Shown: positions 2,422-49,861 of the stretch, piece after piece
Numbering within the stretch: the first letter of the stretch is position 1
Layout: each line of letters opens with the position of its first letter
Assembly (NCBI GenBank): GCA_964187785.1
Contig: OZ076409.1
Coordinates: forward strand, 19,096,001 to 19,160,000
DNA: 64,000 nucleotides
Source of the DNA: Amphiscolops sp. MND2022
Lineage: Eukaryota
Direction: 5' to 3'
Translations under genes and position numbers: made by a program
Notes under the pieces: generated by a model
Databases searched by the model: none
What the model saw: the letters and a program-made list of their open reading frames with translations, nothing else
What the model was told of the DNA's origin: nothing

Positions 2422-2433
2422 CCATACAGAAAA

Positions 2434-2814
2434 ATGGAACAGAAGAAAAATGTTGAAAATGTCGATGAGGTCTCTCATCTGTCCTCAATGAGAAGCAGTG
2501 GTGTGCTTCCAGTCATTACAGTAATGATAGGGAGTGGAAGCAAAACTCAAAAAACGTTCGCGTTGTGCGACTCTGGAGCTAGTGTGTTGTTTCTTGACGA
2601 GAGTCTGATGATAACGCTAAATCTGACGGGATACCCAGCAGGGATTCAAGGAACATCAGATTTTAGTAGCAAACTACTTCGAGTCAAGATTGGAAATCAA
2701 GACGGAAAGGTCAAGGAAGACATCAGCGCCTATAATCATCCCAACGTGAATGCAGGAAATCGAACGTACACCCTCGAGAAACAGAAGGGAACAACCCTCA
2801 CCTGTCAGTTTTGA
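2434..2814 (+). pseudogene. BEL/Pao aspartic protease remnant
   Basis: TFALCDSGAS catalytic motif directly after gag. Confidence 0.75.
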
Positions 2815-3744
2815 AAGACTCTACCGTCAACTTGAAAGATTTCAAATTCATCTTGGGCCAATATTGTTAACACTTCACAGACACACAGAACATAGAAAAT
2901 GTGAAAACGCAAAGCCGCGGGCAGTGCGAACGAAGCTGGGATGATGGATGATCGGTGGATCCTTGCCTCAACAAATGACTGCAAAACTCGCAACTGAAAG
3001 CGTAGTTTTTGCAGAAGTAGATCCATTGGCGGATCAAGTGAAGACTCGGTGGAGCTTCCAACTGCAGCGTATCCGAGACGTCCAAGTAAAAGACGGACAA
3101 CTCACCAGACGTATTCGTTGTAGAAAGCAACTGGCAGGGAGTCAGCACCAAAACTCTCCTCGTGGAAATTAAACAAGTATGGCATGAAGAAATGCACCTT
3201 GTTACGGTTGACCATAATTTTGTCAAGAAATTAGTGTAACGCTTTGTTTGCTGAGAGAGAGTGTAGATGTCGCCTCTGCGCAACAGCCTGTTGAAAAAGA
3301 AGTATTCAACTCAACTGCAAGCAGTGAGTGTTACTGTCAACACTCTAATACTTGAGGAGGGCAGAAAGTGTTCTCATTTGGACAGAGATATTGGATTCGT
3401 GAATGAGTGCCAAATGGAACTTCATGAAGTTCCAAATGGCATAGCGATATATCGAAGACCCTTCAGTGGTTTGTTAGAACAAGACCAGCCGACCAAAGAC
3501 AAAACAAGTAGTGAAACAAGAGCCATAGATGTGTCATTTGGGAGAAAACCCGATTTTGAGATGAAAGAAAAATTGCATGACAAAATCCTTCCAAACGATA
3601 GTGCAAATTGTTAATTGGTTAGGTAATGGAAACTCAGGAATGGATGCAGCGGCACAAGTTAACTTAGCTCAAACCTATTACCTAGACTGGAGGAAAGAGT
3701 TCAATTGAATCCGAATGGCATCCTATGTGCAGAGATTTTAACAG

Positions 3745-4224
3745 GTGAAGTTGCAGACGAAATATCACTGCTGGGAGCGCAAATGGGTTCCTTCAAAAGC
3801 ACGAACAACAACAAGTTTCGAATATGGGCCTTGCTTATGGCCGGCCGCATCATTGGAAGCAATGATGATGCAACTTGAATCTTTTGGAAAATGGAACAGA
3901 GAAGAAGTTAGACAACTCGAAGTCAATGATTTGGTTTGGATTGTGGATGAGAATGTGAGAAGAGCTCTCTACAAGATGGCTAGAGTTTTGAAAGTCTATC
4001 ATGAAAGCGATGGGCGAATGATATCAGCGCTGCTGAAAACTGAAGATGAAAAACTCAGAAAACCAGTAGTAAAACTGGCACCCATGTTTTTTGAAAGTTT
4101 TTTTCGGAGAAAAACAGGGCTGGCATTGTTGGCGCCAGTCAATTGCAAGCTCAAAAACTCAGATTCGAAAGTGACTGACGAAACTTATTACTCAAAACAC
4201 TTAGAAACTTTATCAAAATTTTAG
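3745..4224 (+). pseudogene. BEL/Pao integrase C-terminal (DUF5641-like) remnant
   Basis: LEVNDLVWIVDENVRRALYKMARVLKVY..DGRMISALLKT....RKPVVKLAPM, which matches the end of the pol at 35477-37297. Confidence 0.8.
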
Positions 4225-4275
4225 TTGGAAATTTACAAGTTTCAGCAGAAATAGGCCTGAGTCAAAAAGGCCACA
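4127..4275 (+). repeat. Probable short 3' LTR of the decayed BEL/Pao element
   Basis: Begins TGTTGG after a purine-rich/gggc tract and ends GGCCACA. The partner LTR is not in the window, so this is unconfirmed. Confidence 0.4.
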
Positions 4276-4619
4276 CCCCTTTTTTTCAGAAGCACTCGCT
4301 CAGTCACCCTGAAACTTGGCAAAATGACCTGGGTCAGGCTCCATGAAAACCCAATTTTGATGGACCAATTATCTTGTGATTTTCTCAAATGACCTTGAAC
4401 GAAAAGTAACTCTGTTGAAATTATGATACTTACATTGAGTAAAAATAACTTCTAGCCCATCTAACCAACATGCGAAAACCACCACTTTGTTCGTTTACTT
4501 AGCCAATACCTTCATATTATGACTTAAATGTCAATCATTCATACAACATATTTTGATGAATATTTACTGTAGAATTGTACACGATATGTATACCATTATT
4601 AGATAGAGATTTTCTCCAC

Positions 4620-5191
4620 TTAATAGCTATAGTCAATTTGGGTCTCAGGACCGCGAGACTAATTAACTTTTCACATCTTTACATTTTTTCGCTAGATTCA
4701 GAGCGAACATGTAGCTACTCTCATAGTTGGAGTCCTGGAGCATGTAAAGATACAGAGCGGGAAGTATGTGCGTCGATTTCTGCTTCCTGCAATCTTTTCC
4801 CGGCTTCTCTTGTTTGGCCTTGACGACGCAAATATAGTCCTTTGTGACTGCATCATATCTTCTCCGCATCGTTTCCGGTCTAGCAAGCGTTTCTCTCCCC
4901 TTTGCCAGTCTCCTGGTCTCCGGGCTTTCATTTCTTCTTCGAATAATTTTCATTATCTCCCGGAAGGCTCCCCATTGATTTACATTTTCTTGGTTCGTTT
5001 CGTTGTCAGTGATGGCGATGTTTGAATTTGAACTGATTTTCGCGGTGCTAATATCGGACTACCTGGATGTAGTATTCTCTTCTGCGATGATATTGTTCAC
5101 GTGGTTTTTGTTCTGGAATGTTTTCTTTGATTGTGTTTGGTTCTTCTTTTGCTCAATTTCAATCCGGTTCTCCCTTCGTTCCTTTTCGCAT
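4620..5191 (-). pseudogene. Distal (post-RNase H) remnant of the Gypsy element at 22126-25084, separated from it by the giant DNA transposon
   Basis: Frameshifted IMKIIRRRNESPETRRLAKGRETLARPETMRRRYD..QRTIFASSRPNKRSREKIA segment, recognised from memory of related Gypsy families. It becomes contiguous with the 22126 flank when 5194-22123 and one TA are removed. Confidence 0.6.
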
Positions 5192-5221
5192 TACAGTGCC
5201 AAAAGTGGGTATTTTGATTAT

Positions 5222-5510
5222 TTGCAGTGGATTTCGCTGGACGGCAGTTTTGGAAAGCGTGCAGCGTAATCCACTAACAAATGCTATTACGTTGCAGTCG
5301 ATTCCACTCTTTTGGCGATTTTTCTGCAGCGAATTTCGCTGCAAATCATTGGATTCCACTATCAAATACCTTAAACATTCGGATCTTGCAGTGGATTCCA
5401 CAAAACACTGCCGTGGATTCCACTGAACGCTGCAGTGGACTCCACCGATGGCCGCAGTGGAATCCACTATCAGCTGCAGTGGACTCCACTGCAGTGTTTT
5501 AGTGGAATTC
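5222..5510. repeat. Left subterminal array of the palindromic motif (G)CAGTGGAWTCCAC(TG)
   Basis: About ten exact or degenerate copies, e.g. gcagtggattccac, gccgtggattccactg, gcagtggactccac, gcagtggaatccact. Confidence 0.85.
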
Positions 5511-5830
5511 ACTGAATTATTTCACCTAATTATTTCCACTGCAGTATTTAGTGGAATTCACTGAATTATTTCACTGAATTATTTCACTGAATGATTTCAC
5601 TGAATTATTTCACTGAATTATTTCACCTAATTATTTCACTGAATTATTTCAATACCAACTCACACTGCAGTGTTTTAGTGGAATTCACTGAATTATTTCA
5701 CCTAATTATTTCCACTGCAGTATTTAGTGGAATTCACTGACTTATTTCACTGAATTATTTCACTGAATTATTTCACTGAATTATTTCACTGAATTATTTC
5801 ACCTAATTATTTCACTGAATTATTTCAATA
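5497..5830. repeat. 13-bp minisatellite (TTTCACTGAATTA)n within a ~176-bp higher-order duplication
   Basis: Repeated tttcactgaatta units. The block cactgcagtgttttagtggaattcactg occurs at ~5488 and ~5663. Confidence 0.9.
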
Positions 5831-6556
5831 CCAACTCACAAAAACTATCAACCATCGAAAAAAAGTGGAGTTCATGTACTTCAGTGCCCTTCCTTCACGA
5901 GTTCAGTTTTGAAATGAGAAACTTTTTCAGAATCAGCAAGTGTCACAAAAAGAAGGATTCAGAATTTCTTCTTTTGACAAATTATTCCCAGTGAGTTTTT
6001 ACCGCAATCACGCAACGTTTTACCGCTTTAGTTTGACTGTTATTTTTTCATACTTTGATTGAATCATAGTGGGCATCAAAATTTCACACACAGTTCCTGC
6101 TAGTTACCTAGTTATACACACATACCTTTAGGTATAACTAGCTTTCATTTTTCATTTACCTCATGGTGGATACCAAAATTTGCTTCCGGAAAACTCACTT
6201 CAAGCATACTGCTGACTGCAACGGAGACCTTATCAATTCTACATCAAATTCCACACACAGCTCTTTCGTGTATTTTAGGTACAACTAGTTCCCATTTTTC
6301 AAATACCTCAAGGCGGATACCAAAATTTCAAAATGAATTACAAGCCGAATGATGAATGGAAATCTAAATTCGAGTGAAGAAGACGTTGCAAGGGAAAATG
6401 TAATTTACGGTGTTTTGTTTCGATATTACGAAAAACAAACATTTGTACTTGTAGCAATCAGTGTTTACATACAAGTGAAATTATAACGAAAGTAGTGAAA
6501 AATTGAATACACAACAAAGAAAAGTGTTTTGTAAACGGAGTTTTCTGACGATTCCA

Positions 6557-7274
6557 TCAGTCAAACATCGGTTGAGAATCTTCATGGAAAAGTTGATTGG
6601 CAATGGGGTCATTGTAATCAAAACGGAGCTGCTCAAATGGTAGAATATCACGTGTAGCTCGGAACACTACAATCTTTTTGCCATTTTGAAACAATTCGAT
6701 CACTGTTGGCTTCATATTGGCGCCGTTTGATTTCAACTGCAAGACGTCCAGGGCAGCGAATATTTGGGTGAAGGGGGCAAATCTCTTTGGAGGCATCAAT
6801 TATTCTTCTAGAGGCGCCACTTTTAACCTCCAGAACAAACTCTTGCTCCACACCTTCTTTCCCGAGGACTTGGCTCAATGACATGTTTAAATACACCTCG
6901 CCATGGTAATCCATCAAAATGTCGTCCTTTGAAAATTTCTGTGTGGCAATCACACATCTCCCAAATTTTGACATTTTGGCCAAACAGATTCCAGGCCACA
7001 GCTGCGTCTCACATCGTTGCGACAACAAAATTTGTTCTTCATATGGTAAATTATGAGCAAGTCCAGCATACCGAATTCCACTGCTCTCATGTACCTGCGA
7101 AGATTTTCTAATTGACTGGTTGTTAGAGAGAATCAATAACTGCGCTGTCACTTTTTTCACGTCCTGGTTTTTATCCTCCAGCGAAGTCCACTTTTGTCGC
7201 TGAAAAAATGCCGCCACTCTTGACTCAAGACAGTTAATAGCAACTTTCCCAGAAACGTGTTCAAAGTATAGCAA
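6557..7274 (-). pseudogene. SET-domain lysine methyltransferase (PR-Set7/SETD8-like), frameshifted
   Basis: FGRCVIATQKFSKDDILMDYHGEV...EFVLEV...RIIDAS...CPGRLA [frameshift] LKSNGANMKPTVIELFQNGKKIVVFRATRDILPFEQLRFDYND. The conserved NH(S) after GRLA is missing at the frameshift (~6735). Confidence 0.8.
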
Positions 7275-8532
7275 GGCCCTGGCTGACTGACTGGCGAGTG
7301 TACCTTTGCTGGTCTTGGCGGGCGCGAACAGCGTTTCTCACATCGTCTTTGTCGAAACCTTCAACATTCGAAAGAACCAAATTCACTGCATGTTTCAGCT
7401 TGGTGATTTTGAAGCATGGGTCATTGGAAAGGGGCATCAGTTCCGCGACTTTACCTTTCAATGTATATTGATCTTTTGTTTCTGCTTTTTTGCTTGAAAT
7501 GAAAAGATCTACAACAGATTTAACGCGGAAGTCCGTTTTACCAATTGAATTCACAAAGAATAACTCTGTATTAATTGGACGTTTGTCGGCCTTTTCGTAT
7601 CGAACAATGGCTAACTTGGTGTGATTGGTAACAAAAAACGGCCGAATTTGTGTAAAATATACTTTCAATGCTTCAACAAGACTTCCGGATACTTTGTGAA
7701 TTGTTCGTTCCGATGATCCAATTGTGTGTTCCACACAGAGATTGAAGGCGTCGCTCAGTGAATCTTCTTCGTGATCCATCACGATTTGCACAACTGAGTG
7801 TACCGAGACATTCCGGATGGAACTTTCAAGCATAGGTGGTACCGCATACATGAACAGGGTTGTAATTATGCATCGAAAGAGTTCCAACTTAGCTTTTTGT
7901 ACTAGTCCCACATTTTCTTTCGATGCCTGGACATGTTTAGCCAACGTTCTTTCGTACATGTTGTTGTCAAAGTGAGTAACTTTCGCACATTTGGATTGAC
8001 TGTTACTTGAATTATCCTCACTGCACTGGGAGTCAAATGGACGCTTCCCGGGTGGCTCATTGAGCTGGGGTGGCACACTGGTCACGGGCACATTGCTCTG
8101 GGGTGGCAAGTTCTGGTGAGGCAGTGAATTCTGTGACGGGGGGTCCTGTTGTAGTGGGTTCTCAGGCGGCAAAGGAATTTGGGTCAGATTGTGAGCATTC
8201 TGCAGTAATTGTTCTAGATCTTCTGTGGGCGTATGTTCAATCAAGTGCTCGATCCCATCAGAGTTCATCATTCTAGTTGCACTGAAGAAACCCTCCTCGG
8301 GGGCCGTTGGAATTGGCGAATAAGATGGCGGACAAAACATGGATGCATTACTGAGGAAATCTGGCGGCACATTCCAGTCGGTAGATCGTCGATGTAACTG
8401 TTGCACAGGTGTAGAAGTCTGGGATGGACACAAGCGTGTTGATTCTAGATTTGAAATTTTGTCAGGCATGGTAGAAGTATTCATGAAACTAGGAGAACAA
8501 ATCTTGACAGTGGATTTCGCTGAATGAATCAA
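7261..8532 (-). CDS. Pro/Gln-rich N-terminus plus a divergent, probably inactive tyrosine-recombinase-like domain; likely originally fused to the downstream SET domain
   Basis: Pattern SIRNVSV...LCVEHTIG...KVSGSLVEALKVYFTQIRPFF...LFFVNSIGK...KITKLKHAV resembles eukaryotic (Crypton-like) YR folds. Catalytic R/K/R positions appear substituted. Its stop overlaps the SET ORF in another frame. Confidence 0.5.
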   Translation of the reverse strand: MIHSAKSTVKICSPSFMNTSTMPDKISNLESTRLCPSQTSTPVQQLHRRSTDWNVPPDFLSNASMFCPPSYSPIPTAPEEGFFSATRMMNSDGIEHLIEHTPTEDLEQLLQNAHNLTQIPLPPENPLQQDPPSQNSLPHQNLPPQSNVPVTSVPPQLNEPPGKRPFDSQCSEDNSSNSQSKCAKVTHFDNNMYERTLAKHVQASKENVGLVQKAKLELFRCIITTLFMYAVPPMLESSIRNVSVHSVVQIVMDHEEDSLSDAFNLCVEHTIGSSERTIHKVSGSLVEALKVYFTQIRPFFVTNHTKLAIVRYEKADKRPINTELFFVNSIGKTDFRVKSVVDLFISSKKAETKDQYTLKGKVAELMPLSNDPCFKITKLKHAVNLVLSNVEGFDKDDVRNAVRARQDQQRYTRQSVSQGLAIL

Positions 8533-8929
8533 AATTATGATGTAAAAAGAAATGACAATTTTGAAATTATTTTTTTCGATAAAGCGTCGTTTTCATAATT
8601 AGTAGAGACTCAATTTCACCCATTGCACTTCACAGTGACTAAATTAATTATTTCAACCAGTAAGTGTTATCAGGTTTATTACGGTGGTTGAGTCCTTTCG
8701 GGACTCAAATGCCTATTCAAATATATTAACACTCACGAGATGAGTTTAAAAACTAATTGCTAGTAATAAATTCTTTTATTGAGCGCTCAAAACGGAATGA
8801 CACCTTCTTTTAGGATCATCACCGTAAAATTACCCTCTTTTTCGCGCAGTTTATGTGTTGACACCTGGTAATCACTTTGCACAATTTTGAACAGTTTATT
8901 CTCAGAGTAAGCTCAAGTATTTCTTTCTG

Positions 8930-9574
8930 TTGAAGTCAACTTTAATCTCCACTACAATGCTTCTGCAAACTTTTAAATTAAATGAAATTGTCCAAATCCT
9001 CGACCCTGAAACCTATATTTGGGAGTCTGCGAAGATAATAGCGTTCATAAGTGATTGGTCTCTGAAAATCCAATGGATCGACTGGAACAATCGTCTGCAG
9101 AAAATTGAAATTCCCCTAGATTTGCGTCCTGACCCAAACAGGTGGAACATTAGAAAAGCACGACATTCGCAACCAGTCATGTCGAAAAAGCGTTCTAAAC
9201 CCCTGTCGTATAACCCAAACCGACTGCAAAAAAACGAGCCTGTGACATTCTGGCTACCCGATTGTGAGTGTGTGAAGCATTGTTTTATTGATTCCCATGG
9301 AAAAATCAAAACGGGAACCATTTCGACGAATGACCCATTTAGCCATGAGTGTGTCGTGGAGATGGACAAAATGTTAAGATTTATCCCCTATTGCTATTTG
9401 AAGAACTCAGTGGAAGATACCCATGTTCACGATGAGAAAGCAGAAGACGACGAGGAAGCTGAAGAGACGAGGCAGGAACATCGGGAAGAACCAAAACAGA
9501 AAAGACCTAAAACACAAATACCAGAAATAGACTTTTCAGCATTGATACCGCAAACCGATGTTGGTGTCAAATAA
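8930..9574 (+). CDS. Hypothetical protein with possible tandem Tudor/Agenet-like beta-barrels and an acidic/basic tail
   Basis: FKLNEIVQILDPETYIWESAKIIAFISDWSLKIQWIDW is a Tudor-like pattern (W..A.I.....+.V.W..W). A second similar unit follows. Pattern recognition only. Confidence 0.4.
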   Translation: MKSTLISTTMLLQTFKLNEIVQILDPETYIWESAKIIAFISDWSLKIQWIDWNNRLQKIEIPLDLRPDPNRWNIRKARHSQPVMSKKRSKPLSYNPNRLQKNEPVTFWLPDCECVKHCFIDSHGKIKTGTISTNDPFSHECVVEMDKMLRFIPYCYLKNSVEDTHVHDEKAEDDEEAEETRQEHREEPKQKRPKTQIPEIDFSALIPQTDVGVK

Positions 9575-9625
9575 AGCTATGTACCATGTGTCAATGGAAT
9601 TTGTCAAAAAGGATCCATTATTACT

Positions 9626-10270
9626 TTGTCTGGAATGGAATTCAAAGTGGAGGATTTGTACTACAGTGCACAGAAGTTGAAACCATTTGCAATAATGGTA
9701 TCCATGGACGACGAAGACTGCGAACTTAGGATGCCAGTAAACAATTGTTCGTTAAAGATCTCGGACTATTTAAAAAACGTGGAAATCAATTATTTCACTC
9801 TTGATAATGATGTTGATAGAACGTTTGCAGTCTTTTCTGCAATTAAGAGATGTGTTGGTTTGTCGTTCAAGAAGTCATCAACTGTGACAAACATGGTACC
9901 TGCAACAGAGCTCACAAAACGTGTCTGTGGGTTCAAGTCGGACTCAAGCAGAGAAAACGTGAAATTTTCAATAGAAGTTGAAACGGGAAACTTGGGAAGC
10001 TACAACAGCTTAGATTTTATATTGGGCCAGAACTGGGACATCATTCCAGATACGCTTGAAGATGAGCCTGCAACATTGATCAAGACTTTGAAATTCACGG
10101 AACATCGCGACTTTATGATGTTCTCACTCAGGTGCCACATAACTACAACTGAAGGCCACTACAAAAAAATGGAGACCATCGACAAAGCTTCAGGCAAAAC
10201 ATTCAACATGCGCACATTGAATACTTTGTTGACCAATAGGGGTAGTAATTTTGGTATCCACCGTGAGTAA
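9626..10270 (+). CDS. Hypothetical protein (cargo, unknown; possibly the second part of the 8930 gene)
   Basis: 214-codon open frame with protein-like composition, 52 bp downstream of the 8930-9574 ORF and followed by an AT-rich region with AATAAA. Confidence 0.4.
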   Translation: MSGMEFKVEDLYYSAQKLKPFAIMVSMDDEDCELRMPVNNCSLKISDYLKNVEINYFTLDNDVDRTFAVFSAIKRCVGLSFKKSSTVTNMVPATELTKRVCGFKSDSSRENVKFSIEVETGNLGSYNSLDFILGQNWDIIPDTLEDEPATLIKTLKFTEHRDFMMFSLRCHITTTEGHYKKMETIDKASGKTFNMRTLNTLLTNRGSNFGIHRE

Positions 10271-10589
10271 ATGTGCAAATACATCTTCAAAAATCGTCTG
10301 TTTTGTTATCCTAAATAAATTCAATGGTATTTTTGTTGGTATTGCACTGATAAAATTCTTTTTCTTAATTCGATTGTTACAGTAATATTGTCCTTGTTAC
10401 AATAAATGATGTCAAAAAACTTTTTTCACTTGCGACTACTTTCTTGAAAAATTCTCCCCAGTAGATAATTTCAAATTGTTATTCAGAACTGTTCCCGATA
10501 CGTAATAATGCTTTGTTACTTTGGTTTTTGCACATTCAGATTTTTGGTACAAACGTTCTACTAAACCTAAATGCATCTAGCCTGAAACA

Positions 10590-11050
10590 GTAAGTGGATT
10601 TGACTAACGTATAGCAATACATTGACAGTGGATTCCACAAACAAATGCTTAAACATTTGCAAACCAATACAAAAGGGGTACATTCAGTAAAGCATTAGTT
10701 CTAAATAGACTCAAATTTCTATTGCAGTGGATTCCACTATTCTGGTAAGTGTTCTTCATCCTGCGAAAAGCGATATGCGGAATTGACTAACATATACCAA
10801 TACATTGACAGTGGATTCCACAAACAAATGCTTAAACATTTGCAAACCAATCCAAAAGGGGTATATTCAGTAAATTATCAGTTCTAAATAGACTCAAGTT
10901 TCTATTGTAGTGGATTCCATTATTCTGGAAAAAATTCTTCATCCTGCGAAAAGCGATATGCGGAATCGACAGACGTATTTCAATACATTAAAAATGAGTT
11001 CTACAAACTAATGCTCGAACATTTGCAAATCAATATAAAGGAGTAAATTC
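10590..11050 (+). repeat. 183-bp tandem array (~2.5 units) containing CAGTGGATTCCAC motifs
   Basis: attgacagtggattccacaaacaaatgc recurs at 10621 and 10804. It is the reverse complement of the 16454-17220 array. Confidence 0.9.
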
Positions 11051-11104
11051 TAAACTAAATTCTGTTCAATTCTAAACTAAAAAGTTTGATAAAAAAACAA
11101 TAAA

Positions 11105-14100
11105 CTATAAAAGTTTGCTCCAGGCAGCTTCTTTATTTACCAGAGTGAATTTTTCTCGAGGCTTCTTTTGCAATGTAGGCTCGTTGCAAAGGCCAGCTTG
11201 TAGAGAGCAATTTTCTTGCTCAAAAACTCTTTGAAAGTGTCGCAGCTTGCAATGAGAGGCGGCAGGGTGTCTAAACAGATCATAACGATGGGGTTTGTGA
11301 TTTTCTTTCAACAGATACAATTCCAAGGTTTTCCGATAGACTAGTGGTCAAATATCTATGAAAGGTTTAACATCAAGATTTCGAAAATTATGACATCAAC
11401 AATTGCTGCTTCTAACCTATATCGAAGACGTCCTCCTCCTTTTGATAGATGCTGCGGTCACGTTTCCTTCCCTTCTGTGACTTTTCGGGGATTTCGGCCT
11501 GGTATGTAGGCCCAATTCGGACTTCCTTCACAGTCCCTGTGAAGGCGTACACTGGCCCTTTTGGGTCGCAATAGGGCTTCTCCGGACCCCTCAATCCCAG
11601 CTGATTCAAATTGAAAGCTGGATACACCTGGTAACAAAAGCCATTGACAATGATGAATAGAGCGAATTCAATGAGAAATGTGCAAAATTACAATTACATT
11701 TGAAAAAAATACGTTTAAATTGTTAGGCAGTTCGAAACGAGAACCATTTAAATCCGTAGTTCACAACCCAGTCCGTGGAAGAGATTAGTTATTTTCTACA
11801 ATATCTACATTTCTACATTATCAGTTACCATTCAAAATTAACAAACATTGATTACCATTTTGATGGCGTCGAGCTCACTGCTGATCTGCTCTTTCAGAAG
11901 AGTCAGTTGTGGGCTGGAGAAGAGGGGGAGTTTGGAGATTGAGTTTTCGCTGGAGTTGTCGTATTTTAAACTGTAGCACAGCATACACACGAACAAATCC
12001 GGGAAAAACCTCTTCGTCGTCTATTTCCTGCTGACTGGCGTTGAGGTGACTGTCCACAATCAGAGGGAAATGTGTGACAGCGAGGAAGTTGGAGGCAAAA
12101 GCAATGGCGTCTCCCTTTGTTGCCACTATATGTGGCCAGCGTGCAGGCAAAACGAGGATGTCGCCTGCTTCCACCACAAGTTTGTGGACCCCACCTGTCA
12201 GGGCCTTCAGGTTCCCGAAGGAAGTTGGTCTAAATAAAAACAAATTAGTATAAATTTAAACGAAACAACTGGTTCAATGATTTTGAATCATGTGCATGAT
12301 TGATAATGTGCTCTTCGCAAAATGATGACTTTGAGATGAGTATGTTTTCAGTGCATGATCTGAGTACATTTACCTTTTTGTGGGGATATTGCTCCACTCC
12401 TCAAAGAGCTGCAAATTTGAGCTTGTCGGCTCCACCAGCCAGAAGGTCTTCTGTCCTCGGGCGACAGTATAAAAGGCAGTCGTGCTGGAGAAGTCGACAT
12501 GCCACGGCGTGAGACACTGGTCGTTTGAGACCAGCAAATAGTTGGATGTAGCCTCGGTGAAGTGCCCTGCTGCATCCACACACTCATCTGCCAGATGATC
12601 GGCCGCACAGTGTCTGACGAAATCCGGTACTTGGAAAAACTAAACCAAAACGACAAAACCTCAGCAAACGGTTTCAGAACAAAGACTCCTTACAGTGGTC
12701 GCCAATTTCAACATCCATTTAGTTGCTAAAAATTTGAACAATAGAAGGGTGCATCATGTATTTCACTGACTTTTGGCACTGTAAAGACATCAAATTCAAT
12801 GAGTAATTTTTTCCAATATGAGCCCTTTCAAGATATGATAAAAAAGCTTACATTCCGTTCGAGTGCAATGTCAATGACATTGACAGGAAATGTTCCCGTG
12901 GGTGCTGCTGAGGGCCCCGCTCGCTGCTCGTCCAGGTACTCTCTCACTGTTAAAGACCTGACCTAAAATTCAAAAACATATATTTCAAGCATACTCCTTT
13001 GAAATTACTTTACCAATGTTTAGATAACTTACAGTGAAATCCACTGCCAACGATGACTTAGTGGATACTAAATCTCAATATGTTTTGATTCAACGTATAC
13101 AATAAATTTTATCACTAATGGTTAAAACGCTATACTTGAATGAAGTTTGTGAAATTTGAAAAATACAAAGAATGGCGGGATATGTTCACCTGTTGTTCTT
13201 GTGGCAGCCGTGATGACTTTGCAGCAAGCTTCGCTGCAGGATTAGCTAAGTGCTGCAGCAAGAACTCCACTTGGTGGACGAAGTCCTCAGCGGGCAAAAC
13301 TGGGAGCTTCAAACCTCGCGAGTTCATAGCCCCGTTCTTCCATAATATCGGCTGGCCACGAGAGAGTGCTTTCAAGACCATGCCGTTTTCGTCTTCTTGC
13401 TGATTTTCCCACCTGCAGCAGTTCCACGGCTCCTCTGATAGCGGCATGTCCTCTAGGTACTTTACGAAGAGACTTGACCCTTCGTACGCCCGTCGACTAG
13501 GCTCGCTCGTCATTGCCATGTGGCTTTCTTTGTGGAGGGGAAATCGTTCCAGGTGTCTCTGTAGGGAGTCACTCCGGGCAAATTCCTCACTACAGGATGT
13601 GCAAGGATATTTCTTGCTGGGGTTGGCAGTTCCTATAAAATTTTATTGAACAAAATGTAAACTAACGAACGCAGATTATATAAAACTTGAAGACTATACT
13701 TATGTTCGTTTTATGTTAGTATTATGTTCGTATTTATTTGTATCTAAATCCTAAACTGTCACACAAAGAAAAAATATAAATTTGAGGCTTTACTGGTTTG
13801 TATTCATGTCTTTGTGATATAAGTTTTTCACTATTTTTTCCATGAAAAATGTGGTGGGGGGAATGAAAAGAGCCGCAAATAGTTGACATAGTTGATCTAC
13901 TTACTGTACTTTCTTTCATTTTGGGGTATGTCTGTCGTGCAGTACCTCGCTTTCTCGATGTGCCGCTTGAGCGTTACAAGGGTGGCGAAGACCCTCTTGC
14001 AACGGGGACAGGCTTTGTTTTGCGGCTGCTTTGTACCGCAGGTTTTTTGGTGCCTCTCAAAATTCGTGCGGCGGTTCGACTTGTACGAACAGTTGGGGCA

Positions 14101-14112
14101 GCTGTATTCAGT
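11105..14112 (-). CDS. Spliced gene: 3x C2H2 zinc finger + JmjC histone demethylase (KDM2/KDM7-like) + ELM2-like motif
   Basis: Phase-compatible GT-AG exons 14112-13905, 13632-13190, 12962-12852, 12639-12374 and 12229-~11855, then ~11627-11415 and ~11340-11105. ZnFs CPNC..H, CPRC..H, CTSC..H. JmjC TPWHVDFSSTTAFYTVARGQKTFWLVEPT and AGDILVLPARWPHIVATKGDAIAFASNFL with an intact HxD...H triad. ELM2-like EVRIGPTYQAEIP. A stop or frameshift near 11875 may uncouple the ELM2 exons. Confidence 0.85.
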
Positions 14113-14377
14113 CTGTAGAAACAAAAACAACATTATAGTTTATCCTCGAAGCGTCTTACATGTAAACGCCAAAATTTCAAACCGCTAAAAGATATTACAA
14201 CCTCCCATTTCAAATAAAGACCTGTTTTTCCAATCAGAAAAAAGAGGAAACGAACAAGCAAAAAAAAAAACAGAACATGCCAAACCACAAATGAATTTAG
14301 AACGCCATCATTTTAAAATGGAGATAAATATCTCGGTTGTTTAATAATATGGTTAAATAAAAACAAACAAATTACAA

Positions 14378-14450
14378 CGCGCTTTGGCCGAGTGGTAAGC
14401 AACTAGACTATGAAGCCAAAGATCGTGGGTTCGAATCTCTATCGTGTCGG
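14378..14450 (+). ncRNA. tRNA-like Pol III element (degenerate tRNA or SINE head)
   Basis: A box TGGCCGAGTGGTAAG and B box GGTTCGAATC at tRNA spacing. Acceptor and T stems pair poorly, so it is not a canonical tRNA. Confidence 0.45.
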
Positions 14451-14697
14451 CATTTTACAGTCGACTTTTTACACCCTATGTTACCTCAGAAAAACTGAGT
14501 ATACCTAATTTTTCAAATAATATGTAAAAACTTTGATCTTGCTATCGCGAAATTTAATTTGATTGTCTATGTTAACAACAACTTTTAATCTTTTCTTCAT
14601 ATCGTATCATTGCTTTCTGATTTCATCTGACAACAGTTGAGTATCAAAACGAATTAGTCTTTGACATGGGTATTCGATTGCTTTCCCTTAAAACGAG

Positions 14698-14985
14698 ATA
14701 GAGATCGAATTCGGGTCTTTTCTGTTATTCCCCCACTCTCTTCTTTAAAAATTATCTCCAATATTTTTTTGTCAGGATAAGAATCGAGGTATTTGACTCA
14801 CTCTCTAATGATTCACTTCTTAATGATGAACACCTATCAACATTTCAAAAATTAGGACAAGATTTGTTGTATAAGATTGACTTCATATTGATTCACTTCT
14901 TAGTGATTTGAGTGGGATGGGAGTAAACTTCTGGGAGGGGCGGAGGGTTTGTAGCAGAAAAGACCCACGAATTCGATAACTATAT
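14698..14985. mobile_element. Small MITE-like inverted-repeat element
   Basis: atcgaattcgggtcttttctg (~14704) is inverted relative to cagaaaagacccacgaattcgat (~14955). TSD not resolved. Confidence 0.4.
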
Positions 14986-15119
14986 TTCACTCCCAGATTT
15001 CTCTGCAAATTGTGAACAGTTTTTCACTCAGGTCTGTTCAAAGGATGGCAGTTCAAACTCAGATTCGTTTTTACTACTCGGGGGAAACCAAAAATTTTGT
15101 ATGAAAATTCAAGAGCAGT

Positions 15120-15560
15120 TTTGCTGACAGTGTGTACAGTTTTTTTTTAACTCAGATTTTTCCACTACTCACGGTGGATACAAAAAGTTTCTATACAAAT
15201 GCAGGACAATACTTTACTCACCGTGTGTACCAAAAACGAGTACAATAATTTACTCACGGTAAGTACCAAAACCAAAGCGGTGTTTCTTAAAACTGAGTTT
15301 TTTTACTCACGGTGGATACTCGAATTTTTCCAAATGAAACTAACGTTTTTGCTGACAGTGTGTACAATTTTTTTTCTAACTAAAGTTTTTTCCACTACTC
15401 ACGGTGGATACAAAAATTTTCTATACAAATGCAGGATAATACTTTACTCACGGTGGATACCAAAAACGAGTACAATAACTTACTCACGGTAAGTACCAAA
15501 ACCAAAGCTGTGTGTATTAAAACAGTTTTTTTATACTCACAGTGGATATTCATTTTTTCC
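15120..15560. repeat. 228-bp tandem duplication carrying ~8 copies of TACTCACGGT
   Basis: gctgacagtgtgtaca at 15123 and 15351. Internal tactcacggtggatac/taag repeats. Confidence 0.85.
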
Positions 15561-16453
15561 AAATAAAACTGAAATTTTTACTTCGTATCCCAAATTGTAG
15601 ATGTGAAACATTCTTAAGAAAGAAACTAACCATTGTGGAATGAGGAAGCAGACAACGTTTAGGGAATCTAGAATTAGACAAAGGTAAGAGAAGGGCTTAA
15701 CGAATGTATCTTGAAATAAACAAAACTAGCAAGCTGTTGAATTGAAAGGTCGAACGACGAAGAATCAATTTCCTAGATCCACTTCGGCAGCCAATCAAAA
15801 TCGAATTAGCATTCTCGGTTCCGTAAACTTATGTAACAGTTTTGTTTTATACCACTACATTTGCACACAAGTTTACTAAATTGACACTTTCGTCAGGTTC
15901 ATTCCAATTGTGCTGAGTGAACGAATAGTGTTGAACAAATGAATGGTAAACAAAATATTGAAGCGAATTGAAAAATGGAAAGAGAGCAAACTCCTTCTAG
16001 AATACAAAATGACTCGTTTTAACCTACCAAAAATTTTGAAAACGCACTTTAGAAAAATAAAAGAAAATAAAAGTTCAATAAGTGTCAATTGAATGAACTT
16101 TCTTGATATAAATTCAATTTTCAATTCTCACGGACTAAAAGTGGAGTCATCATCTGTCATTTCTTCGGGCTCTGAAACTTCCTCAAAAAGAAATCAACTG
16201 CAACATCCTCTAAAATCATGCCAAATTTTTGATTCCGAAAAAAACTGTCTTCGTTTTATGTTCATCGTATAAGCCCCTCCCCAAACTTTCGACCACCAAA
16301 AACTCAAAAAAGGGGGAGGGGGCGTCTTTGCCGGAATACACGGTATGTTGATTTTGATCATTAACTTTGTTCAAGATTTCTTTCGTCACGACTATGAGGG
16401 AGTTAATTGTCAATTTTATTTAATGTAGCCTGATTTGATTTTTTTTGCTGGAT

Positions 16454-17220
16454 ATACTAATAATTCACTGAATGTACCCCTTTTGGATTGGTTTGCAAAT
16501 TTTTAAGCATTTGTTTGTGGAATCCACTGTCAATGTATTGGTATATGTTAGTCAATTCCGCATATCGCTTTTCGCAGGATGAAGAATACTTTCCAGAATA
16601 GTGGAATCCACTGCAATAGAAACTTGAGTCTATTTAGAACTAATAATTCACTGAATGTACCCCTTTTGAATTGGTTTGCAAATGATTAAGCATTTGTTTG
16701 TGGAATCCACTGTCAATGTATTGGTATATGTTAGTCAATTCCGCATATCGCTTTTCGCAGGATGAAGAATACTTTCCAGAATAGTGGAATCCACTGCAAT
16801 AGAAACTTGAGTCTATTTAGAACTAATAATTCACTGAATGTACCCCTTTTGAATTGGTTTGCAAATGTTTAAGCATTTGTTTGTGGAATCCACTGTCAAT
16901 GTATTGGTATATGTTAGTCAATTCCGCATATCGCTTTTCGCAGGATGAAGAATACTTTCCAGAATAGTGGAATCCACCGCAATAGAAACTTGAGACTATT
17001 TAGAACTAATATTTCACTGAATGTACCCCTTTTGAATTGGGTTGCAAATGTTTAAGCATTTGTTTGTGGAATCCACTGTCAATGTATTGGTATATGTTAG
17101 TCAATTTCGCATTTCGCTTTTCGCAGGATGAAGAACACTTTCCAGAATAGTGGAATCCGCTGCAATAAAGTCTATTTAGAACTAACGCTTTACTGAATGT
17201 ACCCCTTTTGAATTGGTTAA
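16454..17220 (-). repeat. 183-bp tandem array (4 units), inverted relative to the 10590-11050 array
   Basis: aatgtacccctttt at 16471, 16654, 16837, 17020 and 17196. Near-identical units, each with two gtggaatccac motifs. Confidence 0.95.
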
Positions 17221-17375
17221 AATGTACCCCTTTTAAAATGCTTAAGATTTCTTGTCTAGGTTTCCGAGAAAAAAGTGTTCAAAAGCTAAATTAGTACCAC
17301 AAGCAAAGATTAAAACATATGTCTTCGAAATCATTTATTGTAACAAGCATTTGCAGAAATCAGAGTAAAAGTCGA

Positions 17376-20300
17376 TCATCTGCTGGAGTTTTGTTGTTTC
17401 ACTAGGCCGTTTCGGTATCTTTTCAAGGCCACAAGGGCTGACGTATTCGCTATTGATTTGTTATCATCTATTTGATCCATCAAGAGTGGTCGCATGTCAT
17501 TAATTTTCATCGAGTTGATCAAGAGTCCAGGCCTTATAATATAACTTTCAGGGTCCAGAATGACGTTACTTTTCATCATTTCGAGTACGTATTCAACAGT
17601 GATGAACACCCCCCGACGCAAATCTTTTGCAGGCCAAAGCTGCAGGAGACAACTTATTTTTTGTTGAACACTTTTCATCTTCTCTGCTTTCGGCGTCTGT
17701 TGACAACTCGCTTGCGGTACAATGTCTATGGAGCTTCAGTTTTCTTCTCATGGCTTCCAATTGATGTTTATCGCCGGTCGCGTTTATTAGGTCCTCTTCG
17801 TCTTTGACAATAACGTAAAAATTCAAGATATTTGAATGGGATTTCATTATGTTCTCCGCGTTTTCTTTCTCATAAACGACACCTCCCATTTCGGAAATTC
17901 TATCTTCGAGGAAATCCTGTGTGAGCCCACGCTTGAACCTACCTACAATTGTAAATGTCAATCCTCGTAGAAGGTCGCAAAATTCTCTTTTTTCGCCAAC
18001 GGCAAGGCAGGGTAGCGCCAAGGGAGTTCTACAAATGTCTAGATAAGTTCTGGCACCCTCTAAAGTCTCTTCAGTCGTGAGTGTTTTTCTTACATGTTCA
18101 ATGACATTGGATCTTTTTTTTTCGGAACTTGTTGAAGAAATATCCAGGAACCGGCAAAACGAAAATGCAGTATCCAGAAATAATGGATCTTGATGGTAAA
18201 TGGAGCCACCGCCTCTCATAGTTCGGGATTGAAAATTTCTGTTCGCATTGTGGTTCGATTTTTCCAAGCCTTCGCAGAGGTGATTCCATGGCTTCTCGAT
18301 GTGTCCGCTCTCCACTAGTTGGGCTATCAAGGGAAGCTTGAGCTTGTATGGTGACAGCCCCTTTCGCCCGAAGAGGAGCAAATTGATTTGAAAGTATGTT
18401 TCAGCCCATCGTTTGTAAGTGTCGACATCAAATGTTCCCTGAGTTCTCAACAGAATAGCACACTGGTTCAAACTTTGTCGTAGAAGTTCACAAGCGTCAT
18501 ATATTGATATAAATCTTTCTTCGTTTCTTGGATTTATGGGGTCCCGTTTGTCAACTAAATGTGGATGTAAAGACTTAAGTACTTTTGCAGCCCCCAAGTT
18601 GTATCCATCCTCACTTCCAAGTAGTATCTCGGTCGTCCAAACTCCGTCATAAAGGTTCGTGATTGTCCCAAATTGAGCACTTCTAAGTTCTTCTGTTTCA
18701 GCTATAACTGTAAGTGCATTCGACCCCGCTAATGACAGTGGTCCTACTGTTCCTGGGGTTTTACCTACGTTCTTGTGGGTGATATTGAACTGAAAAGACG
18801 GTCTTTTAGCTTCTCGGCTGGTCAAATTTTTCTCAAAGCGCTGTATGCTCAAAGCTTCCAAGGGATATTTGTCGTTAATTACCTTCTGAGCCACTCTTCT
18901 AATATCATTCTCAGTGCAACGCGTTATCATGTGTGTAGCGTCTGGGCAGATTGTTCTGACATCGATTATGCTTGCTAATGCTTCTCTAGGAACATGTTGT
19001 CTGAATGGGATCTTCAAAGATGTTCGTCTTCCATCGACATCTGAGAAGCGGGTGGGGAGGAAATTTTCATCGCATACATATATCGGAAGTTGTGACGGAT
19101 GAGAACTTGAACGTTCAGTTGAAATTCCAAGGACCAAACGCGTCAAGAACGGGCTGTCACCACTGTATGTAATTTCAACGCCCAAGGCTTGTAGTTCTTT
19201 TGTCTGGCGGTATAGCCATCCAGATTCTTGCTTACCCAGGATAGACGGACCAAAGTTTTGTTCCATTGCATATCGGCCATCTTTGCCACGATATGATGCA
19301 AAACAGAAGACAGCTTTCGATGATTGACTGCTAACTGTGGTGTTCAAAATTCTGAATGCTAGACGCGTTACCTCAACCCCCCTATTTCGCAACCGTCACC
19401 CCAAATGTCAATTTTAAGGCCTTCAAGATTGGTTTTTTGCAGTAAAACTAATGACGCAAACGTCACTGCTTTCAGTAAACTGACTCGAAATCCAGAATAG
19501 GTTCCCTCAGGCTCGCAAATTGTAACAAACAATTTCATTATGAGGCTAGTAGCTCTTTTGATGTGACGAATTGACGGTACTAGGCTGCCACCACCTAAAC
19601 CAACCGAAACTAGCCTTTGTCGAATTGCATTGAGGATATCTTCCATGTTGCCAGTTTTCATTTTGATTGAAAGTTCGTACCTGAAGCATTCGGAGGAGCC
19701 TCTGTCCTCCAAAAGACCCGTGAACAAGTCTCGAATGTGATTACCGCTTGCGCTTCTTTTTCGCCATATGCTACGTTTCTGATGCTGTTCTTTGAGAATT
19801 GTGGCTAATCCGTGAATAGGTATACCATGCATTCTAGCAAAATTCAGGACTTTGGACCAAAAAGTTTTCCTATTAGTTCTGTGCCACCTTTTGAGTTGTA
19901 ATTGCGTAACATTCATATCTGATCGTTGCTGGTCTTGTGAATTATCAATTTCTGGTGTCTTCTGTAGCACTCTCTCTTCTTGGAATTTTACTTCAAGGGG
20001 TGTTTCTTCAACCATCTCATGTTGAGAAAAAATTTATCATTTGTAAAAGTACCGACATCGGGAAAAAAACTGGTGTTGAAATATTTTGCAACGAGTTTTC
20101 TTCTCTTCTCGTTCCAAGGTAAGTCTTTATAGCCCCGCAGAATTAGAAGTTTCATTATTTTCGACGCAAGAAAAACAGATCCCTGGGGCTGTCCTTTAAT
20201 TGGTAATTTTCGAATAAGATCGTCTGTCTTCAGAGTGGTCCCTACGACCATTTCAGCAACGATTGAAGTAAGTTTCCGTTGACGATTTTGTAACGTGTTT

Positions 20301-20413
20301 CCTGATATAAAGTCTAGTATTTCGGAATCTATGAATTCTTTCCCATCATCCAGTGATATATTGAACTTTTCGAATTCTGACATTTCTGAACTTTTAGACA
20401 ATGAGTGTGTCAA
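17376..20413 (-). CDS. RAG1/Transib-like DDE transposase with C-terminal BRCT-like domain (~1000 aa, three frameshifts)
   Basis: Overlapping ORFs 19988-20413, 19368-20015, 17593-19392 and 17376-17678 join in order. Motifs WGDG (D1), YSGDSPFL (D2), CPDATHMITR (DxxH), LSPYKLKL and CEGLEKSNH (E) parallel RAG1 D600/D708/DALH/TNYFH/E962. BRCT-like LRGLTFTIVGRF...LEDRISEMGGVV...FITVEYVLE...LDPESY. Two of the frameshifts sit in G6 runs. Confidence 0.65.
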
Positions 20414-21700
20414 TGGCGTGTCAATGAGCTTTTAGAAATTGAGCGTGTCAATGGTGTATCAAATCGTCGATAATGATGAAGCCGAAAAACTAACAAAATC
20501 ATATTCTTTGCGTTTCAGTTTCCCTCCTTTTGCGTCTTCTGATGCGCCTCAATTTTAGCCTCAACTTCAAATAAATTTATTCTTGCAACATTTTTCTCAC
20601 AGTATTACCGCACGCTGTTTAAATAATTCTTCAACACCTGTTTGAAACTATTTGATTGCACGCGTTGAACTAAAACTACAAGGTTATATGTGCGCTCACT
20701 AGTAGGTGATAAAATTAGGCGTGATTGTTCCCAAAAAACTATGTGGAAGGATTTTTCTTGGCAAAAGTTTACTAGCATTTCCAGTAGTCATGTAATTTGA
20801 AGTTAGGGAACCATTACATATTTTTGTGTAGTATTAGGGAAAATTGCTTTACGTCCCCAAAATATCATTATCTCTACGGAGTCCTTTTTTTTCTATCCTG
20901 GGGCATACAACCGTATTTTTCACTAATTTTTCACTTATTTTTTTTGTCTCCACCGTGAGTTGGTTATCAACCGTGAGTCGATTGACATTGTATAGAAGAT
21001 TTGCCAGCAAATGATTCTGTTGTTATTCGACCGTGAGTTGACAGTGAACACCGTTCAAGCACTACAAGTTCTTGGCAAAAAACGGTGAAGAAAAGAAAAT
21101 TTTTTCAATTGTAAAAAACTACATATTATCATGACAAAAAGAAAGACGTAAACAAAATTTTTAACAAAATTTTTATAATAAGGAGAGAACTCTATAATAA
21201 AAGAGAAGAGAGGAACGCATCAGGTGTGAGTTGTAACCCTTGAAGTTGTAAACATTGCAACCATAAAGAGTGATTTTGAAGTTCCCACCATTCGCCGATT
21301 GCTTCACAGATTTGTATGAATTTGACCTGAAACAAACAAAAACAAAAACTTTTTCCTTTTCCCTACACTTTTCAAGATGTTGTTTTTGCAATTAAAGTAA
21401 GATTCGGATAATCGAATATCGGGTAAATATCGAAATCAAAATTTCGGGTAAACGAATAAAAATCCCCGACAGTATAGGTCATACTAGCATGTTTTCGTTT
21501 TATCGAATATTTCGCTGAATCGAAAATTTTTCGCCGTTCCTGCATAATAAATTAATAATAAATTAATAGTAATAAATATATATAATTTGTTAAAACAGGT
21601 GTGGGGGGACAAAACTAAAGGGCCAAAAGGTTTGTTTCAGCATGAAAAAATGAAAGAAGAATATTAGAAAGTTATTATTTATGTTTCATTGATCTGTCCT

Positions 21701-22080
21701 TTCGCTGAAACTTGCAGTGGATTCCACTTCAGCTTACAGTGAATTCAACTTTGGCTTACAGTCAATTCCACTCGTTTTGCAGTCAATTCCACAAGTTGAA
21801 AAGTGGAATCGGCTGTAGGCCAAAGTGGAATCGACTGTAAGCCAAAGTGGAATCCACTGTAAGCTGAAGTGGAATCCACTGCAAGTTTCAGCGAATTTCG
21901 CTGAAAGTTGAAATAAGCTGACGCGATTGGTTCAATCGGTTGGCAGTGAAAAGCAGTGGATTTCGGTGCACACATTTTTGTACATTAGCTAGATATGTTA
22001 GTGGAATCCAAAACAGGCAACAGCGGAATCCACTGAAAATCAGTGAAATACATGTTTAAAAGTATGTCAGTGGATTTCGG
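21701..22080. repeat. Right subterminal CAGTGGAWTCCACTG array, including a ~195-bp imperfect palindrome (21701-21895)
   Basis: ttcgctgaaacttgcagtggattccacttcagcttacagtg at 21701 is mirrored by cactgtaagctgaagtggaatccactgcaagtttcagcgaa ending at 21895. More motif copies continue to ~22080. Confidence 0.9.
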
Positions 22081-22125
22081 TGACTTAATAGCACAAAAGT
22101 GTGTTAACCCACTTTTGGCACAGTA

Positions 22126-49763: not shown

Positions 49764-49861
49764 CTTCGCCACGACTCCAATATAACCAATTAGTCTCTGT
49801 CCGACAATACATCAAATCGGACCCTCCAACTCAGAGCTTTCATAACTATCAGCAGCAACTG

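Follow-up and report, generated by a model that had tools for sequence, protein, structure and literature searches.

To our knowledge, few transposons encode enzymes that act on epigenetic marks, and the known cases lie mostly in plants, fungi and oomycetes and carry one such gene each. PMC12730594 describes HarbingerS and oomycete MuDR elements with SET genes, fungal KDZ, Plavaka and ESTA elements that carry TET/JBP, and plant VANDAL elements with VANC. It also groups EnSpm/CACTA, Mirage, Chapaev and Transib in the CMCT clade, whose elements have CA...TG termini and target-site duplications (TSDs) of 2-5 bp and whose signature is the motif pair C(2)C and H(3-4)H (PMC12730594). In a red alga, CACTA families measure 16-20 kb and carry 4-5 open reading frames (ORFs) (PMC6431247). 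Here we analyze a 64,000-nucleotide stretch of DNA from Amphiscolops sp. MND2022 (contig OZ076409.1, forward-strand positions 19,096,001 to 19,160,000; hereafter the window), which holds one copy of a large DNA transposon encoding a transposase and three candidate chromatin proteins: a SET-domain protein, a JmjC-domain protein and a Tudor-like protein (Table 1). We lean towards reading this copy as an inactivated cut-and-paste transposon of autonomous type, with a transposase of RAG1/Transib-like fold and three integral chromatin genes whose products would act on the element's own chromatin.

The window element is a copy of a real, multi-copy, large cut-and-paste DNA transposon. Other copies were fetched by way of the encoded proteins from assembly ERZ25074608, with pieces of the transposase leading to loci L001, L004 and L005 and the SET protein to L006 and L007; L008 and L009 are one contig with a complete copy. 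ERZ27286575, ERZ1742291, ERR15087781 and SRR4030075 also contain copies. The copies at L001 and L004-L008 are 90-98% identical to the window element and lie in different flanks. Divergent families are represented by L002 from the same assembly (17.7 kb) and L010 from another sample (13.1 kb). The transposase of L002 is 48% identical to that of the window family, and DNA identity between L002 and L010 is 70-79% throughout the genes and at the termini. Clustering at 90% identity yielded protein clusters of 72-128 members each, distributed over different large contigs. Because many copies occur in different flanks and the window copy is inserted inside another transposable element, we conclude that the element has been mobile. 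A preliminary description of this DNA, made from its letters alone, had proposed a giant DNA transposon of ~16.9 kb with terminal inverted repeats (TIRs), and the copies dispersed over many large contigs bear this out: the termini recur in L001, L002, L004-L008 and L010, and the cargo genes in L002 and L010. The window copy is a mutationally inactivated pseudo-element in which three of the four genes are broken.

Copies also differ in structure. An internally deleted 11.6-kb copy (L008:7816-19430) lacks the segment matching window 11548-16051, which contains the JmjC module, and keeps both TIRs and a TA/TA TSD. At L005:4905-8344 and L008:4580-10527, the right end of the element and ~0.66-0.73 kb of flank are tandemly duplicated, giving two identical termini that are each followed by the same flank; these duplications could stem from aberrant transposition, replication slippage or assembly error.

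We place the limits of the element further out than the preliminary description did. That description had 17-bp TIRs at 5194-22123 and a TA duplication, making the element a TA-targeting one; such a duplication would be of the Tc1/mariner kind. Positions 5194-5210 do read CAGTGCCAAAAGTGGGT, with the complement at 22107-22123 bearing one mismatch, and in the window TA borders CAGTG...CACAG on both sides. The inverted repeat, however, continues through TAATG: a repeat finder returned 24 nt, with CGCATTA leading into CAGTG... and ...CACAG leading into TAATGCG, and the repeat is 5 bp longer per side. The sequence ...CCACTTTTGGCAC[A/T]G TAATG (CAC[A/T]G-TAATG) is present at 9/9 independent termini from seven copies (two from the window, two from L008 and one each from L001, L004, L005, L006 and L007), whatever the flank. 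Beyond it the flanks diverge at once, reading aatttt, aggttc, caaaca, tttggt, caatag, tataaa, taaatg, cggtct and cgaaaa. The blastn match of L006 begins exactly at window 5189. The TIR has the consensus start 5'-CATTAC[A/T]GTGCC..., its left and right copies differ only at position 7 (A versus T), and the divergent families L002 and L010 retain the same outer bases, with CATTAC[A/T]GTGCA at both ends. We therefore assign the TA to the TIR, since TAATG is kept at every terminus and flanks differ only after it. The dinucleotides outside TAATG vary (CG, TA, TT, AA, AG, CA and TG), and the transposase has no match to any Pfam model, hence none to those of Tc1/mariner type. On these observations the Tc1/mariner-type TA duplication fails, and TA targeting is barely credible.

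The true TSD is 2 bp of variable sequence. Among complete copies the left and right dinucleotides are CG/CG in the window, TA/TA in L008, TT/TT in L002 and TT/TA in L010. The duplication is thus perfect in three of four, a small sample in which each match has a chance probability of 1/16, making a chance origin of all three unlikely. Single ends of other copies are followed by AA, AG, CA or TG, and the target dinucleotide is not fixed. We also considered PIF/Harbinger elements (TWA duplication) and piggyBac (TTAA), and the flanks fit neither.

The insertion site lies in the pol gene of a long terminal repeat (LTR) retrotransposon. To the right of the element, the minus strand carries a zinc-knuckle gag (23843-24367) and a reverse transcriptase RNase H domain (22460-22735); Pfam returned no domain for the left flank (4225-5193) itself. 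The 989-aa pol of a related retrotransposon at L006, with RT_RNaseH, Integrase_H2C2 and rve domains, aligns through residues 24-190 to window 22654-22154 and through residues 256-324 to window 5031-4825, both on the minus strand. The 66 pol residues between the aligned parts correspond to ~180 nt of flank, both sides summed. Because the two flanks are colinear in this pol, we read them as consecutive parts of one LTR retrotransposon pol that the element has split, as had been suggested when the flanks were first seen to rejoin into one retroelement. In a three-way DNA alignment, the L006 pol and the two flanks are too divergent to resolve the 2-bp duplication, and no further copy of the flanking LTR element was seen in the window or in the first loci fetched.

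The transposase ORF that had been claimed is present. The minus-strand ORFs that make up the gene (17385-20383) are colinear with P0001, an uninterrupted 1040-aa protein from another sample, at 79% identity over the main ORF. Relative to P0001, the window copy has three frame changes and L001 two, one of them at the same place in both. A profile of 19 transposase members retrieved 536 cluster representatives at E <=1e-3 and 178 at <=1e-30. The Pfam scan revealed no transposase domain; in a lenient scan of the 19 members, the one signal to recur was BRCT or BRCT_2 near the C-terminus, present in 9 of them with a best E of 7.6e-7. Searches of PDB chains, RAG1 and Transib included, with phmmer and with the profile yielded no match.

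At the level of fold, an AlphaFold2 model points to RAG1 and Transib. The better-modeled regions of the transposase are the core at 300-440 and the segments 600-720 and 760-990, and residues 349-444 form a strand-strand-strand-helix-strand-helix pattern that may represent an RNase-H-like core. Foldseek against the PDB ranked RAG1 first (6cg0, E 5.7e-4, probability 1.0), followed by HzTransib (6pqx, template-modeling (TM) score 0.48) and the amphioxus RAG-like protein BbRAGL (6b40, TM 0.44), with the hAT transposase Hermes lower (probability 0.5-0.8). Among acidic residues, the alignment conserves D351/D355 in the DIWGDG motif of the first strand, D435 just past strand four, D507 as part of D507-x-x-H510, and the pair E730/E733 within CEGxEKSNH. 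Conserved cysteines and histidines are C505, H510, C515, C667, H727 and H737, with C503 in the consensus; CxC-P-D-x-x-H and H727/H737 stand in place of the CMCT motifs. The preliminary description had called the transposase RAG1/Transib-like, and this is partly supported: the predicted fold, of mediocre quality, agrees with it, and similarity in sequence was not detected.

Several features are shared with the CMCT clade. The ends are of the form 5'-CA...TG-3' (CATTAC...GTAATG in the window, L001, L002, L004-L008 and L010) and the 2-bp TSD is within the clade's range (PMC12730594). With CACTA elements, the element has in common its large size, its subterminal repeat arrays and its possession of several genes. 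Its CATTA(C) start is one base off the CACTA terminus, and its transposase fold is nearest RAG1/Transib. RAG1 and Transib are, as far as we know, the only CMCT members with solved structures, and 2 bp is a TSD length that we take to be typical of Mirage. In contrast to CMCT elements, the transposase has no detected similarity to Pfam transposase models or RAG1/Transib chains, lacks C(2)C and H(3-4)H in their canonical form (PMC12730594), and carries BRCT at its C-terminus; as accessory genes the element has predicted histone modifiers rather than a gene of TnpA type. Because the signature motifs are missing and there is no sequence-level match, membership in the CMCT clade is not established.

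The best structural matches of the transposase lie among Transib, ProtoRAG and RAG1-RAG2. Nucleotides 4-10 of the TIR, TAC[A/T]GTG (5192-5198 and 22119-22125), are one base off the CACWGTG heptamer of Transib ends and recombination signal sequences, which could be coincidence. The TSD is 2 bp rather than 5 bp and the heptamer-like motif lies 3 nt inside the end, and for these two reasons membership in Transib fails. With respect to RAG1-RAG2, we found no RAG2-like (kelch/PHD) gene in the element and detected no sequence homology.

We next describe the cargo. The ORF pieces of the window itself gave only sub-threshold JmjC in Pfam and no match for the transposase, SET and Tudor-like pieces, so that intact homologues had to be drawn on. 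Two changes of frame break the SET gene of the window, one close to 7287 and one around 6738-6823 that falls within GRLANHS; the gene is 98% identical to intact copies. In those copies, a single ORF of 639-644 aa (P0218, P0223 and P0225) encodes a protein with a C-terminal SET domain (PF00856, E 3e-8 to 4e-10) and the motifs GRLANHS and RFDYNDP, which substantiates the SET-domain ORF proposed earlier. In the PDB, 4LDG, a SET8-like protozoan protein, matched best (E 1.2e-7), and KMT5A/SETD8 came next (E ~1e-4). The SET domain is thus closest to that of host KMT5A/SET8 enzymes, from which the protein differs by a 470-aa N-terminal region that contains no recognizable Pfam domain.

The JmjC gene is split over several open blocks (Table 1). 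We read a canonical 144-nt intron at 12373-12230 directly from the sequence (AAAAG/GTAAAT...TTTTATTTAG/ACC, with slashes at the junctions; GTAAAT...TTATTTAG), and its predicted removal joins the JmjC frames. As the intron splits the domain, each JmjC half scores under the curated Pfam cut-off. Both halves are closest to KDM2A, PHF8, PHF2 and KDM7 (E 5e-11 and 2.4e-6), and the Fe-binding HxD...H is kept, with WHVD and WPHIV aligning to the metal ligands of KDM2A, PHF8 and KDM7. An intact HxD...H, C2H2 fingers, ELM2 and the intron agree with the spliced JmjC gene with an Fe-binding triad, zinc fingers and an ELM2-like motif that had been described. Host enzymes of the KDM2/7 group typically carry PHD, CXXC or F-box modules. 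The element's protein shares HxD...H with KDM2A, PHF8 and KDM7 and differs in having C2H2 fingers and ELM2; PHD, CXXC and F-box gave no match in the JmjC ORF pieces scanned, and no SANT was seen beside ELM2 in the scans run. The similarity of the SET and JmjC proteins to host enzymes is too low for substrates to be transferred.

The third cargo gene encodes a protein of ~410 aa that is plausibly Tudor-like. In the window two lesions interrupt it, an in-frame stop (9572-9574) and, towards the C-terminus, a change of frame near 10165; in L004, L006 and P0195 the ORF is intact at 401-417 aa. The protein has no Pfam or PDB sequence match. When its AlphaFold2 model was compared using Foldseek, the Tudor domains of PHF1 and PHF19 came out best, with TM 0.70-0.78 and a root-mean-square deviation of 2.5-2.9 Å over ~64 residues, and other Royal-family domains, including the tandem Tudors of 53BP1 and BAHCC1, appeared lower in the list. 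Of the Tudor-like ORF claimed earlier, the gene itself stands, with a predicted barrel at a weak fold level.

We found the same gene set in the divergent families. L002 has the order SET(-), Tudor-like(+), transposase(+), JmjC(-), and L010 has the same order; in the window family the transposase follows JmjC on the minus strand, whereas in L002 and L010 it precedes JmjC on the plus strand. The modules rearranged between families are bordered by internal repeat arrays, which hints at recombination between the arrays as the source of the difference in gene order. To compare selection on the genes, we used the Nei-Gojobori method on in-frame high-scoring segment pairs (HSPs) between L002 and L010. 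The ratio of nonsynonymous to synonymous substitution rates (dN/dS) was 0.04-0.10 for SET (167 and 209 codons), 0.084 for the Tudor-like gene (425 codons), 0.06-0.14 for the transposase (up to 645 codons) and 0.06-0.18 for the JmjC exons (up to 158 codons). The synonymous rate (dS) of these blocks was at or above ~1 (0.84 to >3). Out-of-frame control HSPs mostly gave ~0.2-7, with a few short ones near 0.15-0.2, and only the four named genes showed long in-frame blocks with low dN/dS between L002 and L010. The transposase on contig L013, from a fourth data set, is far more remote (P0081, 1301 aa) and has a 419-aa SET gene divergently adjacent to it; neither a JmjC nor a Tudor-like gene was seen on this 10-kb contig. 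No recombinase domain was matched by Pfam in the element ORFs scanned or in intact homologues, and the YR-like cargo of the preliminary description falls away with the lack of a tyrosine recombinase domain in any ORF scanned.

These comparisons bear on whether the chromatin genes are passively captured host fragments (Pack-type) that do nothing for the element. Capture of host genes is common among large DNA transposons, and in the window copy the SET and Tudor-like genes are broken. That breakage accompanies breakage of the transposase, however, and so points to the general decay of one copy, and intact ORFs of 644 and 417 aa exist in many copies. Linkage is kept at 48% transposase identity, dN/dS is 0.04-0.18 at dS >1 for all three cargo genes, and SET is linked even to a distant transposase relative. 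Given linkage across families, low dN/dS and many dispersed copies, we consider accidental capture very unlikely and exclude a single-copy host locus. The conservation of four genes between L002 and L010 instead shows the SET, JmjC and Tudor-like genes to be integral to the family and kept under purifying selection.

The element also has its own repeated DNA motif. The palindrome GTGGAWTCCAC (<=1 mismatch) has 30 matches in the 64-kb window, all within the element, against a chance expectation of 0.94, in accord with the subterminal palindrome arrays noted before. They group at the left end (5297-5737), at the right end (21717-22033) and in internal arrays A and B, with one lone match at 13034; the 11-bp palindrome is thus present in both 183-bp arrays as well as both subterminal arrays. 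L010 has a different subterminal motif, CGTGGAAACC, which is again present in the internal arrays of L010, hinting at co-evolution of a binding protein with its sites at the ends and in the interior. The palindrome clusters are most likely binding sites for a DNA-binding protein encoded by the element; candidates would be the transposase, through its N-terminus, and the JmjC protein, through its C2H2 fingers. We considered a foreign transposon nested between the internal inverted arrays and rejected it, because the arrays bear the element's own palindrome and the modules are the same in all families. Two other repeats were observed. The GGTGGATACCAAAA motif of the 230-bp repeat (TTTTGGTATCCACCGTGAGTAAA, 23-25 nt; 15302-15465) recurs, inverted, where the Tudor-like gene has its 3' end (10247-10271). 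A ~76%-identical short interspersed repeat occurs in opposite orientation at 13737-13855, in the first JmjC intron, and at 25197-25312, outside the element; related copies are present in L002 (15302-15401) and in the L005 flanks.

Under the reading that we lean towards, the DDE transposase would excise and integrate the element by staggered cuts 2 bp apart, and such an event would have inserted it into the LTR retrotransposon pol with duplication of CG. A sequence-specific protein of the element would bind the palindrome arrays, and the SET, JmjC and Tudor-like proteins would have as their targets the nucleosomes of the element or its vicinity. Recruited to the element's arrays, they would most likely deposit, remove and recognize a histone lysine-methyl mark and thereby keep the element transcribed and accessible. 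Alternatively, the reader protein might license the transposase on suitably marked chromatin, by analogy to the PHD finger of RAG2 acting for RAG1. That finger binds H3K4me3, a precedent for a transposase paired with a separate reader of histone marks. Here we infer which residues are catalytic, which proteins bind DNA, which histone sites are modified and what purpose this serves; among purposes, we would rank permissive chromatin or mark licensing above coupling to repair, and the latter above self-restraint.

Several results weigh against this reading. A sequence-level link of the transposase to RAG1, Transib or Pfam transposase families was not found, and its AlphaFold2 model has a mean predicted local distance difference test (pLDDT) score of 59.6, with Foldseek matches at E ~1e-3 and TM 0.38-0.48. 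There is more than one candidate for the catalytic triad, the second Asp being D435 or D507 and the Glu E730 or E763, and conserved CxxC or HxxxH/HxxxxH, corresponding to C(2)C and H(3-4)H of the CMCT clade, was not found in the transposase alignment. The Tudor-like model has a pLDDT of 42 overall, with residues ~195-260 reaching 63-84, and its Foldseek matches have E = 0.05-0.1. Substrate specificity cannot be transferred to the SET protein because its match to KMT5A is weak (E 1e-4). Finally, L010, one of the four complete copies, has an imperfect TSD.

The same proteins could instead couple transposition to DNA repair or the cell cycle, a purpose that we regard as rather unlikely. H4K20me1, a Tudor reader and BRCT would then recruit end-joining factors to the breaks made in excision and integration, and a demethylase of PHF8 type would reset the mark. 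PHF8 removes H4K20me1 and 53BP1 reads H4K20me, and such coupling would fit the C-terminal BRCT of the transposase, a SET domain closest to KMT5A/SET8, a JmjC domain closest to the KDM2/PHF8/KDM7 group and the presence of the 53BP1 and BAHCC1 tandem Tudors in the Foldseek list. But these similarities are too weak for substrate specificity to be read from them, and the best Tudor matches are the H3K36me3 readers PHF1 and PHF19 rather than 53BP1. The palindrome arrays argue for action at the element, which is compatible with repair coupling and not specific to it.

A third purpose, self-restraint, would have the element place repressive chromatin on its own copies, through ELM2-HDAC and a SET-dependent mark, and so keep its copy number and the harm done to the host low. 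ELM2 in MIER, RCOR and MTA recruits HDAC1/2, marks of KMT5A type are tied in general to chromatin compaction, and the JmjC protein does have an ELM2 motif. This motif has no SANT next to it in the scans run, however, and demethylases of KDM2/7 type usually remove repressive or elongation marks, and we consider self-restraint improbable.

Table 1. Features of the transposon copy in the window, in window coordinates
Feature	Position	Strand	Remarks
Element limits	5189-22128		16,940 bp; based on conserved termini of other copies
TSD, left copy (CG)	5187-5188		2-bp direct repeat of 22129-22130
TIR, left, 22 bp	5189-5210	+	CATTACAGTGCCAAAAGTGGGT; terminus kept in every other copy and family
Left subterminal repeats	5297-5840		11 palindromes GTGGAWTCCAC (22-bp period at 5387-5490), then 13-bp and 176-bp repeats
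SET gene, KMT5A/SET8-like	6560-8484	-	Broken by two frame changes
Plausibly Tudor-like gene	8957-10217	+	~410-aa protein; broken here
Internal array A	10574-11050		183-bp unit x2.5 with terminal palindrome
JmjC gene, KDM2/7-like	11415-14139	-	Multi-exon
JmjC open block, C2H2 fingers	14139-13900	-	Two fingers (Pfam E 9.5e-9)
JmjC open block, third finger-like motif	13642-13133	-	YPCTSCSEEFARSDSLQRH (by eye), then part N-terminal to JmjC domain
JmjC open block, HxD half	12639-12374	-	WHVD
JmjC open block, distal-His half	12229-11878	-	WPHIV
JmjC open block, ELM2	11687-11415	-	24.1 bits versus cut-off 21.7
Possible further JmjC block	11347-11108	-	
230-bp tandem repeat	15119-15570		Two copies; AT-rich non-coding spacer
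Internal array B	16456-17218		183-bp unit x4.2, inverted relative to array A
Transposase gene	17385-20383	-	Predicted RAG1/Transib-like fold and C-terminal BRCT; four frame segments
Right subterminal palindrome array	21700-22033		
TIR, right, 22 bp	22107-22128	-	21/22 complementary to left TIR
TSD, right copy (CG)	22129-22130		

The rest of the window contains further retroelements. BEL/Pao remnants lie on the plus strand at 1411-4224, with a DUF1759 gag (1411-2421) and DUF5641 (3745-4224) and most of pol missing. An apparently intact BEL/Pao retrotransposon occupies 30920-37297, where two ORFs of 1513 and 606 aa carry DUF1759, RVT_1, Peptidase_A17, Integrase_H2C2, rve and DUF5641; the presence of BEL/Pao elements speaks for an animal host. 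At 48042-54967, a gag-like ORF (DUF1759, 573 aa) is followed by a stop-free Gypsy-type pol of 1701 aa with protease, RVT_1, RNase H and integrase. Two minus-strand ORFs at 55207-59431 (390 and 683 aa) have no Pfam match, and GC content there reaches 52%, the maximum of the window.

Our literature search returned no publication on an animal element with this gene set or on any JmjC-carrying transposon; an unpublished Repbase or Dfam entry is possible. We examined 'Lanisha', which is a moss element and not this one. In having a conserved accessory gene that acts on epigenetic marks, the element resembles HarbingerS, MuDR, KDZ, Plavaka, ESTA and VANDAL (PMC12730594), and HarbingerS and MuDR show that transposons have recruited SET before. 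Relative to these elements, it differs in bringing three chromatin genes together, in being an animal element and in having another transposase lineage.

Our results point to an animal cut-and-paste element that keeps a predicted methyltransferase, demethylase and reader under purifying selection across divergent families. The question whether a transposon sets its own chromatin state thereby becomes testable with defined proteins and DNA sites. A bolder proposal, which we put forward tentatively as possible rather than probable, is that the element belongs to a previously undescribed deep lineage of RAG1/Transib fold in marine animals, possibly a superfamily, which has long kept a writer-eraser-reader set for one lysine-methyl mark together with BRCT, with the reader serving as a RAG2-like partner and the mark being set on the element's own arrays. 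An orphan transposase whose model is closest to RAG1/Transib could add a branch to the group ancestral to V(D)J recombination, and the element could supply a second case of a RAG-like enzyme coupled to the reading of histone marks.

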